Source: Hyphochytrium catenoides
Taxonomy: Eukaryota > Protista > Hyphochytriomycota
NCBI GenBank assembly: GCA_900088475.1
Contig: FLMG01001283.1
Span: 8,016-72,015 of the forward strand
Reading direction: 5' to 3'
Length of the DNA stretch: 64,000 bases
Both the position numbers and the translations under genes were made by a program. This document shows positions 38,447 through 46,100 of this stretch, one piece after another (positions within the stretch are counted from its first letter, which is position 1; each line of letters starts with the position of its first letter). The notes below the pieces were generated by a model. The model had not been told where the DNA came from. It did no database searches and saw only the letters and a list, made by a program, of their open reading frames with translations.

Positions 38447-41400
38447 TCAGTCTATGGGATCCTCTATGGCTCTAGGTCTGGGGTTAAGTGAGGGAGTATC
38501 CTCGTCATGTTCTATAGCTGCCTTCACACCGGAGCAAACAGCATCTAGTCGATTAGATATTTCAACCTCTCTTTCTGGAAGCTCCAGTGAGTGGTAGACG
38601 TGCAGCAGCTGCTTGAGCATGCTTATCATATTTGGCCTGTCAGCCAGTCTAGACTCCAAGAGCTCTCTTGCCTCGTCCCAGTGGCTAGACGCGATGGCAC
38701 GGTCCATGTAGAGCTGTATTGAACGATATGAGCAAGAAGCACAACAAGCAGAGTTAACGAAAGGATGTGGAGGGACTCGAAATAGTTGACCGAGGATCCA
38801 AGAGAGCAGCGACAATGATAATAGATAAAGGATTGCTAAAAAAGGCCAGAGCGGCGTGGGAAGAGATAGACAATACCTCTATGATGCAGTCAAGCTGCTC
38901 GGAAGAACCGCCCAGGGCTCTTAGCTTGGGCTTCTCGGTCACCGCCGGTCGTAGGAGACGCAGTAACAATGCGTCGTCGCCTCGAGTGTAGGCTTCGAAA
39001 GCCTTAAAAGTCTCAATAACCGCGGGTACTAGACCATAACCAATCAAGCTTAGTCAGAGGAAATAAGTACCAGGCAAAAAGAGAGAGAGAGAGAGGAGTT
39101 CGGGAGCAAAGAGGTCTGGTCTTTTCATAGAGAAGGCGTGGTAGACAGAGTAGACTTTTAGAGAGTGACGAGTGGAAGCTGTTAAGAGGCTCAAGCAAGG
39201 CAAAGGAGTCATGCATAAGCTTGACTTATCCTCACTACCTTCCGTCGAGTCCTCCACCTTCTTTAGATACGCGGGGTCTTCTCTTCCTAGGTCTACCAGA
39301 GCACTCCAAAGCTATTGCCAGGAGAGAAGCCAGACCAGCGAGGCATAACAAAGTAAGGAGTGAGAGCGCATACTCTCGAATATAATCTGGCCCATAGGTA
39401 GCTTACCAGCACATCGTAGAGAGGGGTTCCTTGCTTCTTCGCGTCCCATTCCTTCGCGTCCATTATCTCCTTTAGCGTCTCTTTTATCTCCTGGCGCTTT
39501 GCCATGATATGTTCTGAAAAAGCAATGGTCAGCAAATCCCGGTTTCGGTTCTACCTCACAAATGCTGCTCCATCCTTTAATGGGCTGCCCAGCCTTGAAG
39601 CTCCTTTCTCGCTTTCTTACTTCTTCGCTCTCCCTTCTTCTCTCCCTCTCCTTTTCTCTGCTCTTCTCTCTCGTTTATGTACGTCTCTTTATCTCTGCCT
39701 GCTCCTTATCGGAACTTCTGACTCTATACCTTGAGGCATCTTCCACTCGCTCTTGATGGGAAGGTCCTCCATATTCATCCTCAGCCTAAGTCTAAATATC
39801 ATTCCGAGTGCGTCCAACTGCACCTCAGAACTCGTGCGGAAGTCTGGAATCCAGATTTTTGTACGAAGGATCCTGAGTACCTCGTCATAGTTGCCTAGAT
39901 AGCAGAGCCAAGCCAAAGAGACACTGGTTAGAAAGAAAACTACCGACTAGGAACGACAAAAACGACATAGGTAGAGGTGTAATATAGACGTAGCAGACAG
40001 AAAGACCAGATATCTTAGGCTGCATGCGTACCCAGTTCGAGCTCAAAGAGGGCGAGATGCCACCAATTGTGTGAGGTCATGAAAGGCATAAAGTTTGTCC
40101 AGTTGGACGAAAAGCTTCGGCTCCATGCTCTTCCCTCCAAAATTTGACCCTAGACGAGTTGACATTGACACTTTGCTGAGGACTGATCGGCAAGGAACAA
40201 TGCGTCTGGAGCCAAAGTGTGACGTGGACCAACTTCTTGGTAGCGTCCTGCCCATGCCCTCTGGTCTTACCTTTGCTAGTAATATGTGTGCTTCTGTATG
40301 CTGACTCCACGGGTCTGAGGATAGGATTTCTACCCCTTTTTTAGCTGCTACCTCGGCCTCGTTCACACGATCATTCTCTTCCAGCGCGAAAGCCTAGTCG
40401 AAGTGGGATTATAGAGGCTATGAGACGGGAGATCTTTAGGACCTCTCTAGGGAAGAAAGTTGTTAAGGCCAGGTAATGACTGGCTAGTGAACGTAAAGGG
40501 TACTGACAATAATCCTAACCTAGTATGACTCGGACATCTGGAAACTTACATACATCCCCTGGAAGTATTGCTTCTCTTTATTGGCCTGAATGACAGGCTC
40601 TGAGTCTATGATCCCAAGCATGCTTTCTGTATCTCCTCTCAGAAAGGCTAACAGCTGCCCCCTCTTCAATGCAAAGAGGTCGGATGGATATGAGGCCACT
40701 ATCTCTTGGTACAGTTCATAGGCCTTTTGTGTATCATGCTGGAGAAGCCTAAATCCCAAGAGGGGAGAGGAAAAACAGACCACCGTGAGGAAGATTGGTG
40801 AGATAGCAGGTGGAAGAAAGTGCAGGAAGCTAAAAGGTTGTGAGACGTCAGGTGGAAGGAAGTGCAGAAGCTGGTTGGCTTCAGGAGGTAAGGGCAACGG
40901 CTGACACGATGGTGAAGACTGAAAGAGGGGTAAGGGAGAGAAAAAGGAGAGAGAAATGAACAACTAACCATGCCTCACAAGCCTCGAGCAGAAGGATCTC
41001 CCTTTGAGTCACTGCTCGGGTTTGAAGCAAGGACCTTGCCCTCTTTAACGCCTGGACAACATCTTCTTGGGAGCCACTAGATATTAAATGAATTACCAGC
41101 TTAGCCTAACATCATAACCTTTGGACCTGAAGACTGAGGATAGGCTTACTCGACTACGACAAAATCTGCGTACAAGACATGAGCAGCCAAGCACTCCGGA
41201 TCTGACCGGACTGCCTTCTCAATTACTTTCCAGTTGTCCCCATATCTCAGCACCTCCTTCACATAGCTGTAGCAGGTCGCCCAGTAGACCAGCAGCGCCG
41301 GGTATCATAACGGCATAACGCAAGGAGGGGAGAAGAGGGGCATGTTAGTAACGCAAGAGAGAAGAAAGGCTTGCCACCATACTCATGTTGATTCTCGTCC

Positions 41401-41487
41401 GATACGCCGTCCCTTAGCTTACCTGGCAATGGCATCCCGACACTCCTCGGAGTGAGTGCTCCACTCAAGGCCCCACTCGTCCTTCAT
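38447..41487 (-). CDS. TTC38: Tetratricopeptide repeat protein 38-like, multi-exon
   Basis: MKDEWGLEWSTHSEECRDAIA|SYVKEVLRYG, YPSDLFALKRGQ, GM|AFALEE, DPWSQHTEAH, SHNWWHLAL, LGGSSEQLD motifs. Confidence 0.88.
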
Positions 41488-41503
41488 TGTCTTTGGATGT
41501 GTT

Positions 41504-41665
41504 TTACTCAGCACTCATTTCGTCCTCCTCACAGCAGTCGTCTTCCATGCCACACTCGTCGCCGCAAGGGCAGTCATCGCCACAGCAGTTGCATGAGCAG
41601 TCGCAGTCTTCAGCATGTCCGTGGCAGTCGCAGTCACACTCGTCTGGGTGATGGTGCATCCTCAT
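41504..41665 (-). CDS. Metallothionein-like 53-aa Cys/His/Asp/Glu-rich ORF directly upstream of TTC38
   Basis: Manual translation MRMHHHPDECDCDCHGHAEDCDCSCNCCGDDCPCGDECGMEDDCCEEDEMSAE*: 13 Cys in CxC/CC arrays, 5 His, 19 D/E, no F/W/Y. Confidence 0.8.
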   Translation of the reverse strand: MRMHHHPDECDCDCHGHAEDCDCSCNCCGDDCPCGDECGMEDDCCEEDEMSAE

Positions 41666-43131
41666 GTTTACGATTGACGATCTTGAGTTATACTAGGTAC
41701 AATTAGGTCTGACCTTGCGGAAGGAAATGACGAACTGAGGCTTTCTGTAGCCAGAAAGGACGGAATCTCTCCAGCCTCTGGTGGTGGGTTGCAGAGCAAG
41801 CGGTACAGACCAAAGGCAAGAAGGAACAGGACGAAGATCGCGGTCAGGCCAAATCTGAGTGCAACGGCCCTTCAAGTGTTCTTTTCTGCCTCCTCACCCC
41901 AGAGCAAGGAATCTTGCAAGGTCCTCGATAGATGTAAGACAAGGCATGAGAGACAGGGTGGGAATGACGCAGGGAGCGTGTTGAGGACGAGGTACAAGCG
42001 GAACAAGATGAGAGATAGGAGAGAGAGAAGAGAAGGGGAACACGGAGACTGAAGAGAGACGAAGTAGGGAGAGAACGAAGGGAGGATCATGGGGACAGCA
42101 AGATGGGAGGAAGGTACGTATCAGGCGGCAAAGAGGAGGAGGAGGAGGAGGAGGGAAGAGGAGAAAGGACAATTTCTTCTCATCGTCAAAGAAGAACACA
42201 GATCTTCCGAATCTTTAACGATCAAGCCACTTAGAGCGTTATTCCTAATAGAGACGTTTCTATCCAGAAATCTCAAACTCAGTTTCTTGTTTCATCAGTG
42301 CCCTGTTCGTTGTCCACCATCTTGCTTTTGTACTCTGTACAGAGGGTGGATAGGCGAAATTTATAGGTCTCTCGTTATGTATGGTACGGGGTGGGTGGGG
42401 GTTGACGGGTACGACAGAGGCACGCCCAGAGATTGCACAAACAACAGCAAACAACTAACAACGCAAGAGAGAAGACAATGACCCCATGAAGACTGACGCT
42501 AGACTGACGACGCTAGTGACTTGATAATCGCTATTGAAGCGCTCATAGTTACCAATAAAGTTAACTTTTGGTGAACTGATTACTCGATTCAGGATTGATT
42601 CGGTCTTGAAGTGTCCTTGTTGATCTCTTTCAAAAGAAAAGTTGGAACGTCACGATCGGCGAGGCTTCAGACTTCAGACTCCTGGCGAAGACAGAGCTCT
42701 CGCTTTGCTTACTACTAGGGCTTTCTCAGCTTAATCGTTCCAGTTCTGCTCAACAAGGGCTGGTCATCTTGAGACCATTAGCCTCGCCTTCTGATCTTCG
42801 GGCGCACAGAAACACCCTACAGGTGCCTGATCTTGTCCTAGTGTTGACTACGTTGACCGAAATACTCAGGGAGGACTAGTAGACCTTGACACACTTGTTC
42901 GCTGTTTATGGACCCTAGTCTAACGTGTCCAGCCAACAACCCACGCCTTGCGACGAGGTCATAACCCTCAATCACCCTACTTCTTCCCCAGCATGATTGC
43001 AAAGCTGGCACTGTCCTCTACCCGCAGATGTTCTGCCCCTGCCAATAGACGCTCACAGTAGCTTATTGATGATTAATCGTGCCTAAGACTGCACTGGAGC
43101 CTTAGACCTGTTACTTTGGCTTGTGCTTGGA

Positions 43132-46100
43132 ATGGCAACTGAAGCTGTTACAGGTGATTATTTAATCAAAGGTCCTTATCGCTCAATCTAACAGCTTTCA
43201 TAGAGTACAGAGACCTCATCAGGGAGCTGTTGGAGGTAGACACTGAGGCAGTCACATTGCCACGAGCCTATAATCCACAGGTCAGCCGCCAGATCAAGCA
43301 TCATTGCCCATGCTCCATAATATCGGTTTACACTCTCCTCTGTACAGGGTATTTCCTATCGCCGCGATTCAACTGAATCGTTAGAAGAGGGTCTACTCTC
43401 CCCTCTGCCCTCCAAGGATGACCACCAGGCTTCCAGGTCTCCCTCCCCGGCCGTCATCGAAGTATTAGTCCACGAAGCGGAGAGAAGCGACGCAGGCTCC
43501 AAAGCTGCCGAGAGGAGCCCAGCCTCCACAGTCTCTTATACTGAGATTGATTCGGTAGATGGAGAGGAGAAAAGAGTGGAATTACCAGGAGAATCTCTGC
43601 GATTTACAGGAGGTTCACCGCGTTCTCCCTCCACCCGCCATTATGAGGCCCCTTCCAAGGCCATTATAGGGGCAATGACCCCCTCTCCCGTCAGCTCTAG
43701 AGGCCAAGCATCTTCTGAGCCTCGTTTGCTGAGAAGAAGGTTAGATACTACCCACAGTCCTTACTTTTTGCACCCCGAAGAAAGTACTAATTCTTGCAAT
43801 ACTAGGAGTTCGGGTTTTGACTTCATCCAGCAAGCCGCGGAGGACCAGGGAAGCGAAGCGGTATGTAAGGTCATAGACACTTTGAGAGAAATGAAATAGA
43901 AGTTAGGGAGCGGGAATCAAGTTACCGAGCGCCCTTCGACGGTGGACTAGACGGAAATACCATAGCGAGAACGGGACTGCGAGAGAGGTAATGGCTAATC
44001 CCGTCTTTTAGTCTTTCAACCTACAATCGGAGGCGGACAGCAAAGAAATAGAGTCGCAGCTGACAGCTCTAGAGGGCATTTTGAGCAAGCAGAACCGTGA
44101 TGTACTGGAGCATGTTCGGGTGCTGGTAGCTGCAGAGCGTGCACATCTCCAAGGCCAGGAGGAAGAAAGGGACAGGCAGAGGACAGCTGCCCACTCGATG
44201 GAACTAGAAAGCTTGCGGGTAATATTCTCTCTTCATCGAGTGACCCCGCGTCTTCTAATTGCTGACTACTTCTAGGAAGACCTCACCGACCTGGCAGAGA
44301 GGTGTGGACAATTTGAGCGAATAGCAACAGTCCAGTCAAAGATCAAGCTAGCGTTGGCCGATTACGTTGGAGATAGAGTAAAGAAGATGGTAGGAGAGAA
44401 CCCAAGAACAGAGCACCCTTTTCCAACTTCTAACCAATAGAGCATAGTAATGGGAGGAAAGTGGTAACGGGAGGCAATGGGCAAGGAGAGATGTTCTGTG
44501 GAGCAATCAGAGTATGGAAGAAAGGGAGAGTGATACAGGATAAGAAAAGGCTTTGGACACAATTGATGGTGAAAGTGGCTGGTGAGAGTGATTTGCCTTG
44601 AACAGTACAGGGGGTGGGACCCTAAGCCAGAAGCGGAACCAGCTGTTGGTGGTAAGAGGCCTCTAACATTAGACACCGTGTTCCCCTGCCTCTTAGGAGC
44701 ATTTAATGAGGAAGCGGCGAGTATTCTCGGGTTGGACAGTATGGAAGGCTCGTAGTCGAAAGAAAACAATGGCCACACGGATAGCTATGTTGCACTACCA
44801 GAAGGTGGTACTCCAAATCTGTTCAACTCTCATCCTTTCTGACAACTTACCTTATAATCACCTTCCGATTATCTGGGGGAGCAGCGGCTCTTACAGACCA
44901 TGTTTGCGGCTTGGAGGATCCAAGTGTGGAATCTTAAGAACGACAAGATTCAACAGCGCCTTCAGGTGGGATGATCTTTTTATCGAACCGATTGTTGACT
45001 GGGCTCATATCTCGGGCGCTATATAGGTGGACATCGAAGCAGCAAATAAAGGACTGAAGGCTGAATATGAGGATCGGATACGCAAGGTGCGAACAGAATC
45101 TTCTAGCGTCATTCTATATATTCAAGTCCCGTCATCTCTCTGCTGATTGATTGCGTCCGTATTTCAGTGCGGTCACTCAGAAACCGCAGGGCGTCTAACC
45201 GCCACTGCTCTGCTTAAACGTGCAGCTAGAAGAGGAGCTTGGTCATGCAAAGATAGAGATAGAGACCGGTAAACGAGCAAGAATAAAGCTGGTAAGGATG
45301 CCGCTCACTTCGGGCTGGTTATCTCACCATACACTCTTCATGTTAGCTTTCGGTTCCCTTTCACTTTTTCTAGTTGTTCGACATCTTCATTTAATATTTG
45401 ATGCTTGAACTTTTCATTTTTTGTTCTGTCAGGAAGAGGATCTCAGAAGAGCCTTTCTGCGAGGTGTCTCCATTATGAACTTGGAAGCCCTCAACATTTT
45501 CAGAGCAGGGACGAGCTCAGCTGACACCACGACCGACAGCGCGGAAGTGGACAAGAACGTTGCAGAAAGAAAGGAAGATACTTCTACTTCTCTCTCTCAG
45601 CCCATTGGTCCGTTAGAAGATCCTCTTCCCTCATCTTCATTGTTCACGGGTGGTAAGTAGACTATTGAAGGTCTATATTGTTACTTTAGCTAAGCTTGCT
45701 GACTCCTTTCGCGTGTCTTTAGGTGAAGAATACGCTTTCGTTGAAGAGGTCACAGAAGGCCTTCTGGGAGAAACTGCTCTAGACGACATGTCCAATGGCC
45801 AATCGAGTCTTATCTATCCTCGATCTAGGAATAATGACCAGCCTGTTAATGGGATTGGTTCCTCTCTGGCAATGTAAGAAAATGGTCTCTTCCGCTTTAG
45901 TTTCAGTTATTGTCGTCTAAAAAGAATCCTCTCCCTGTCTTTCACTCTCTGCATCGCCTCCCTCTATTGCACACCCTATGAGAAGACGTCACAGCCTTGG
46001 ATATACCACGTCTGCGTCCCCCAAAAGAGTCGAACAACCACAAGAGGACGACGTGAACGAGGATGAGAGGGACCTCTCACTCTATCTACCTTCAAGAAAT

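Follow-up and report, generated by a model that had tools for sequence, protein, structure and literature searches.

A short cysteine-rich open reading frame directly upstream of a TTC38-like gene in Hyphochytrium catenoides: a possible lineage-restricted upstream cistron

Nuclear loci at which one capped transcript carries two coding regions are described in green algae, where the first open reading frame (ORF 1) has a median length of 291-357 nt and the distance between the two ORFs has a median of 40-183 nt (PMC7896298, PMC11291117). At these loci the start context of ORF 1 is weak and ATGs are depleted ahead of ORF 2, with an observed/expected ratio of ~0.45, which suits leaky scanning (PMC11291117; PMC7896298). 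Gallaher et al. (PMC7896298) also cite Onishi and Pringle for the efficient expression of two ORFs lying 6-10 nt apart in Chlamydomonas. As to peptides that bind metals, phytochelatins are products of enzymes and not of the ribosome, the engineered (Glu-Cys)n peptides EC11/EC20 are synthetic (PMC4292183, PMC4611968), and the de novo ORFs which have been proposed as metal chelators take their His-x-His from (CA)n microsatellites and have no Cys motifs (Lee 2026, PMC13756084).

Here we analyze a locus of Hyphochytrium catenoides at which a Cys-rich ORF lies immediately ahead of a TTC38-like gene, both on the minus strand of the window, that is, the whole stretch of 64,000 nt under study, to which all positions refer. 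The locus had been pointed out by a model reading the letters without database searches, and the ORF which this sequence-only reading described was verified in the sequence with all the stated properties, namely a frame from 41665 to 41504 of 53 amino acids (aa) with 13 Cys, 19 acidic residues, no Lys, and the motifs HHH and HGH. In full, the Cys-rich ORF (41504..41665, minus strand) has 53 codons from the ATG at 41665 to the TAA at 41506-41504, and its product, beginning with MRMHHHPDEC and ending with EEDEMSAE, contains 11 Asp, 8 Glu, 5 His, a single Arg and no aromatic residue (Phe, Tyr or Trp). Cys makes up 24.5% of the residues, arranged in six to seven CxC and two CC motifs, and in 8 of the 13 cases an acidic residue stands directly before the Cys. 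When all six frames of the 64-kb window were surveyed, no other open segment had at least 8 Cys per 45 aa, and the 99.9th percentile of 53-codon windows in this stretch is 7 Cys, as against the 13 found here.

Three short direct repeats occur within the ORF at 41522-41644, with lengths of 12, 17 and 10 nt and spacings of 27, 51 and 84 nt; the 12-nt element GACTGCGACTGC is present twice. Every spacing is a multiple of three and hence in frame, which suggests that the peptide may have grown via internal duplication of its Cys motifs. A tandem-repeat origin was rejected, as TRF detects no array. The remaining reading frames across this stretch are open too, because TGY and GAN codons open them automatically.

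The inter-ORF spacer (41488..41503, minus strand; AACACATCCAAAGACA) has 16 nt, and beyond it the TTC38-like ATG at 41487 is in a frame different from that of the Cys-rich ORF, with a TGA in the TTC38 frame 30 nt upstream of this ATG; the geometry proposed earlier is thus the one that the sequence has. Exon 1 of the TTC38-like gene (41423..41487, minus strand) consists of MKDEWGLEWSTHSEECRDAIA and the first two bases of a Ser codon, its 3' end being set by a joint in RNA contigs. It is followed on the same strand by intron 1 (41267..41422; 156 nt, GT..AG, thus CT..AC on the plus strand), by exon 2 (41150..41266), which is recognized from tblastn matches of TTC38 homologues at 49-56% identity as well as from RNA contigs, and by intron 2 (41077..41149; 73 nt, donor GA/GTAAGC), the retention of which would bring an in-frame TAA immediately 3' of exon 2. 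Exon 3 occupies 41076-40965, and the remaining exons together extend over 38447..41076 (minus strand), with boundaries worked out in part. Since the tblastn matches of the homologues run from the N- to the C-terminus across the exons, the similarity to the TTC38 family is full-length, and one homologue (P0030) falls into clusters named "Tetratricopeptide repeat protein 38" with a score of 0.97. The gene is apparently intact, and as the N-terminal motif of the family starts at most three residues from the ATG at 41487, the start of the TTC38 frame is well placed.

The stop codon of the Cys-rich ORF lies within a donor-like GA/GTAAAA (window 41502-41509; GA/GTAAGA in the strain of run X3), which has the phase of the exon 1 donor and the GA/GTAAG form of the intron 2 donor. 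If this site were spliced to exon 2, the Cys-rich peptide would be joined in frame to a TTC38 without its first 22 residues; no such joint is present in the contigs of runs X1, X2, X3 and X7.

Transcript evidence was taken from the contigs of these four sequencing runs, aligned to 40900-42700. The runs were picked for containing the ORF region, so that the 3' parts of mRNAs are unfairly sampled, and the contigs are short-read assemblies with a depth of ~4-7 rather than single molecules, in which overlapping transcripts could be merged; the kinds of the runs are guessed labels ("RNA?", "DNA?"), and X7 bears the label "DNA?". The search of public runs had also returned the probable source DNA runs (X4-X6, with shares of 0.69-0.84) and ~20 runs under the labels of other organisms, mostly of RNA or unknown kind, each with a small share of 41400-41960; among the latter are three true plant metatranscriptomes (X10, X13 and X14), which contain words of this region. 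Near-identical pieces of the locus are found in runs labelled as about ten other organisms and in the plant metatranscriptomes, which suggests that the source organism, or close relatives of it, are widely present in other samples as associates or contaminants.

In all four runs the contigs have a single joint, 41266/41423, which removes intron 1, and then continue unbroken through exon 1 and the spacer into the Cys-rich ORF. Upstream they end at 41573 (X1), 41631 (X2), 41689 (X7) and 41713 (X3), and hence the ORF is covered in part by X1 and X2 and in full by X7 and X3, which reach beyond its ATG. Downstream they end at 41149, 41136, 41107 and 41093, i.e. at or within intron 2, which the contigs of X2, X3 and X7 include in part; the depth of exon 3 is zero in all four runs, though this exon is inside the aligned stretch, and no poly(A) loose ends are reported at the downstream contig ends of the four runs. 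Such ends could be due to retention of the intron, to termination within it, or simply to low depth. At the level of contigs it is supported that the Cys-rich ORF is transcribed on RNA which also carries the correctly spliced exons 1 and 2 of TTC38. The earlier argument that both ORFs share one RNA is borne out to this extent: it holds for four runs and as far as exon 2, with the contigs stopping before exon 3.

The 5' leader that immediately precedes the ORF can be given as 41666..41713 (minus strand), which is as far as the RNA contigs extend (X3 to 41713, X7 to 41689). On the minus strand no ATG occurs between 41947 and 41665, i.e. over 281 nt upstream of the ORF ATG; as gaps of such length account for 2% of all ATG-to-ATG gaps and take up 11% of the sequence, the absence is only mildly unusual. 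In the sequence-only reading the leader had contained a long pyrimidine-rich intron (41693..42552, minus strand, 860 nt) behind an ATG-free first exon. The motifs for it do exist, and the acceptor at 41693 resembles the real acceptors of the TTC38-like gene, but the donor near 42552 is a weak one, a GTAACT without the G at +5 that the donors of introns 1, 2 and 4 have (GTAAGC, GTAAGC and GTAAGT). The corresponding joint is absent from the contigs of X1, X2, X3 and X7, the X3 contig is colinear with the window for 20 nt past the proposed acceptor, and the depth in the four runs is zero upstream of 41753, over ~950 nt; the leader intron and its first exon are therefore not supported. What fits best is a start of transcription shortly upstream of 41713. 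A motif TCATTTCC at 41730-41723 resembles the oomycete initiator element and makes a candidate transcription start; it precedes the ORF ATG by 58-65 nt and lies 10-17 nt further upstream than the longest of the contigs extends. Beyond it, at 41960-42170, the minus strand is pyrimidine-rich over a long tract, to which a (GAG)10 microsatellite (42133-42163) belongs and which has no RNA coverage in the four runs. This tract is perhaps a promoter or an intergenic stretch in common with a possibly divergent plus-strand gene starting near 43576, the latter being a guess from mechanical ORFs alone.

With respect to translation, the 178 nt that separate the start of ORF 1 from that of ORF 2 contain 7 ATGs, whereas 2.8 are expected, and all the ORFs which they open terminate before 41487. 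Leaky scanning to the TTC38 AUG past seven upstream AUGs is implausible, and therefore TTC38 would be made on the ORF-bearing RNA only via reinitiation, or else from other transcripts. The start of the Cys-rich ORF has the context AAACATGA, with an A at -3. The arrangement would suit stop-start coupling, as ORF 2 starts 16 nt past the stop of ORF 1 with no ATG in the spacer of the window. Reinitiation after an ORF of 53 codons and a spacer of 16 nt is usually inefficient, and the Cys-rich ORF should therefore depress the output of TTC38.

Variation among strains provides a view of what is maintained at the locus. The variants fall into one set shared by X2 and X7 and a more diverged one in X3, both 95-99% identical to the window. 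In X3, changes affect 6 of the 16 positions of the spacer, 5 of 162 in the Cys-rich ORF, which is similar to the 2 of 183 in TTC38 exons 1-2, and none of the 34 nt immediately ahead of the ORF ATG (41666-41699), where no difference is listed in X7 either. The excess in the spacer over the ORF is significant (Fisher p = 7e-5), the ORF changing 12-fold more slowly, and the spacer nevertheless has a length of 16 nt in all strains. Three of the five changes in the ORF are synonymous (H17H, S24S and E41E) and two are not (C25S, by which one Cys is lost, and N26S); against a share of 14% synonymous sites this gives p = 0.023, a value from five substitutions between close relatives. In the X2/X7 set, 2 of the 16 spacer positions are changed and both changes in the ORF are synonymous. 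Taken together, the Cys-rich ORF looks to be under a coding-like purifying selection beside an unconstrained spacer of fixed length, though the numbers are small. There is no stable RNA fold at the locus (z = +1.66), nor a conserved one, therefore RNA structure does not explain the conservation of the ORF, and a search of Rfam gave a chance-level snoRNA match only. The X3 spacer, GATGCAGTCGAAGACA, arises via six substitutions and reads TAA-G-ATG-CAG-TCG-AAG-ACA-ATG with the flanking stop and start; the ATG that it contains lies 1 nt after the ORF stop in the TTC38 frame, and would add MQSKT to the protein.

To what family the Cys-rich peptide could belong was asked with several resources. A word-indexed search of 5.8 billion protein clusters found no homologue, an exact-sequence look-up of the contigs encoding the peptide returned nothing, and at E <= 10 neither a Pfam family nor a PDB chain was matched. 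In the ESM Atlas the top score of 0.82 is within the range of shuffled sequences, and the best metallothionein cluster, at 0.69, is below the lead threshold. A scan of JGI metagenomes yielded 53 pattern matches of which 0 were confirmed, where tblastn may have masked the low-complexity query, which makes this negative outcome a weak one. Looking from the side of TTC38, an acidic Cys-rich ORF is absent upstream of five distant homologues in other eukaryotes; the loci surveyed, L001 and L003-L007, are at most ~50% identical, and at this distance the absence shows lineage restriction only. One of these loci, from a GC-rich relative (64.5%), has an open frame with 7 Cys, no Met and no acidic character 160 nt upstream of its TTC38 start (L003:3840-4000), which we judge as chance. 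A Cys-rich N-terminus occurs in 0 of 49 TTC38-like or TPR matches in a Rosetta-stone test; a metagenome scan with TTC38 exon 4 confirmed no relative, and one with a 40-aa version of the exon 2 query gave no short products. By these searches the Cys-rich element appears restricted to this lineage, and as the ORF is missing at the distant TTC38 loci, any link to the function of TTC38 is lineage-specific and not ancient.

The proposal that the ORF encodes a metallothionein needs to be divided accordingly. In composition the peptide agrees with what defines metallothioneins (15-30% Cys, CxC/CC/CxxC motifs, few or no aromatic residues), but its membership in a family is not supported, since no described metallothionein family is matched in Pfam, PDB or the ESM Atlas. 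The label would thus hold only in the sense of "works like" a metallothionein. The composition of the peptide leads us to expect chelation of metals of the soft or borderline type (Zn, Cu, Cd); metal sensing by it is speculation.

From an ORF, a geometry, spliced contigs shared with TTC38 exons 1-2 and a coding-like conservation that are all directly observed, we arrive at a reading to which we give a little less than an even chance: the Cys-rich ORF is a lineage-restricted upstream cistron, or a long peptide uORF, which is kept by selection and lies on RNA from the TTC38 promoter. Transcription would start from this promoter some tens of nucleotides ahead of 41713, for which a leader intron is unneeded. 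Scanning ribosomes would meet the AUG of the Cys-rich ORF first, after an AUG-free leader and with an A at -3, and would make a strongly acidic peptide of 53 aa rich in thiolate and imidazole ligands, which may behave as a metallothionein does, or as a phytochelatin encoded by a gene, outside the described families. We infer that the ORF is present on the full-length TTC38 mRNA as well, where TTC38 would come only from ribosomes that reinitiate immediately past the stop, at a distance of 16 nt here and of 1 nt in the X3 strain, and the Cys-rich ORF would throttle the output of TTC38. A stronger version, which we consider quite unlikely, takes the locus as a true stop-start bicistron of a stramenopile-like protist, in which a recent, selected, phytochelatin-like peptide comes first and TTC38 follows either in stoichiometric amounts, by reinitiation 1-16 nt on, or under a metal gate set by the nascent chain.

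The main and serious rival concerns the extent of the RNA. The contigs may stem from a separate RNA of ~470 nt, which starts at ~41715-41730, has intron 1 spliced from its 3' UTR and ends in TTC38 intron 2, so that the Cys-rich ORF is its sole working cistron; the full-length TTC38 mRNA would then come from other molecules, and the two would share DNA and a promoter without forming a functional bicistron. That all four contig sets end at or inside intron 2, that exon 3 has zero depth in all four runs and that a retained intron 2 gives a TAA directly after exon 2 speak for such an RNA, but no poly(A) loose end is reported at the contig ends, the ends are spread over 56 nt at low depth, intron 2 contains no AATAAA, and runs selected by the ORF region sample the 3' parts of mRNAs unfairly; on this balance we regard the short RNA as improbable though worth serious attention. 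A more radical doubt is that the contigs are genomic DNA of strains without intron 1, in which case they would be no transcript evidence at all. The label "DNA?" of X7 and the intron 2 sequence in three contigs speak for it; the X1 contig, however, matches the window with 100% identity along 269 nt but is without an intron that is present there, which means that it is derived from RNA, and what is skipped corresponds exactly to a GT..AG intron. The contigs are moreover short (237-428 nt) and aligned over their whole length, with no unlike continuation and nothing aligned up- or downstream, where the depth is zero; this is unlike genomic DNA and again indicates RNA, and the occurrence of words of the locus in the metatranscriptomes X10, X13 and X14 points in the same direction. 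We hold a genomic origin to be very improbable.

A further rival accepts the RNA and denies the peptide a role: the ORF may be an ordinary repressive uORF or a fortuitous leader ORF, perhaps translated but with a functionless product, whose Cys and Asp come from GACTGC-like low-complexity DNA. Long uORFs are common in eukaryotic leaders, and the double occurrence of GACTGCGACTGC, the openness of all other frames, the failure of our searches to find a homologue of the peptide and the absence of the ORF at the distant TTC38 loci are all compatible with it. Yet TRF detects no array, open alternative frames are automatic with TGY/GAN codons, and for a uORF neutral in its peptide neither the excess of synonymous changes nor the 12-fold slower change than in the spacer is expected. 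This explanation is accordingly unlikely in our estimate, and slightly more so than the short RNA.

If the peptide is made, the locus of the preferred reading would be a compact natural case, beyond green algae and fungi, of a eukaryotic mRNA that carries two coding regions, at which the start codons rule out leaky scanning, and reinitiation downstream of a long ORF could readily be tested on it. Its product would be an orphan micropeptide rich in metal ligands, of a kind that is missed by annotation and, with 1 Arg and 0 Lys, by tryptic proteomics, as trypsin leaves a fragment of 51 residues. For the uncharacterised TTC38 this would be a first, lineage-specific, handle; and were the metal-gated or coupled bicistron true, the TTC38 family would have its first functional link, namely to metal or thiol homeostasis. 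If the rivals hold, the ORF is an ordinary uORF or a small overlapping gene.

Compared with the described systems, the locus shares with the green-algal bicistrons (Gallaher et al. 2021; Duenas et al. 2024) a small ORF 1 (162 nt) shortly (16 nt) before an ORF 2 of normal size, which is known here from contigs to exon 2, and a small ORF 1 product easily missed by proteomics. It differs from them in the A at -3 of ORF 1 and in ATGs that are enriched (7 vs 2.8 expected) instead of depleted, and the host is not a green alga. To the CPuORFs of plants, fungi and insects (PMC3426882, PMC2276209) it is similar as a putative leader ORF whose amino-acid sequence itself is apparently conserved; in contrast to them, the conservation is among very close strains only, no ligand-dependent stalling is known, and the ORF is long (53 codons) and lacks a recognisable arrest-type C-terminus. 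The peptide resembles metallothioneins in its small size, in 24.5% Cys in CxC/CC motifs, in having no aromatic residues and in its in-frame duplications of Cys motifs, and departs from them by matching none of their families, by its strongly negative charge, and by having no Lys and five His. Its carboxylate-flanked thiolates, with 8 of 13 Cys after Asp or Glu, recall phytochelatins and the engineered EC11/EC20 (PMC4292183, PMC4611968), although the pattern here is irregular and includes His and Gly. With the proposed de novo metal-chelator ORFs (Lee 2026, PMC13756084) it has in common that it is lineage-restricted, short, without homologues, rich in metal ligands and probably disordered, but unlike that class it is based on Cys, does not come from a microsatellite and is an upstream cistron.
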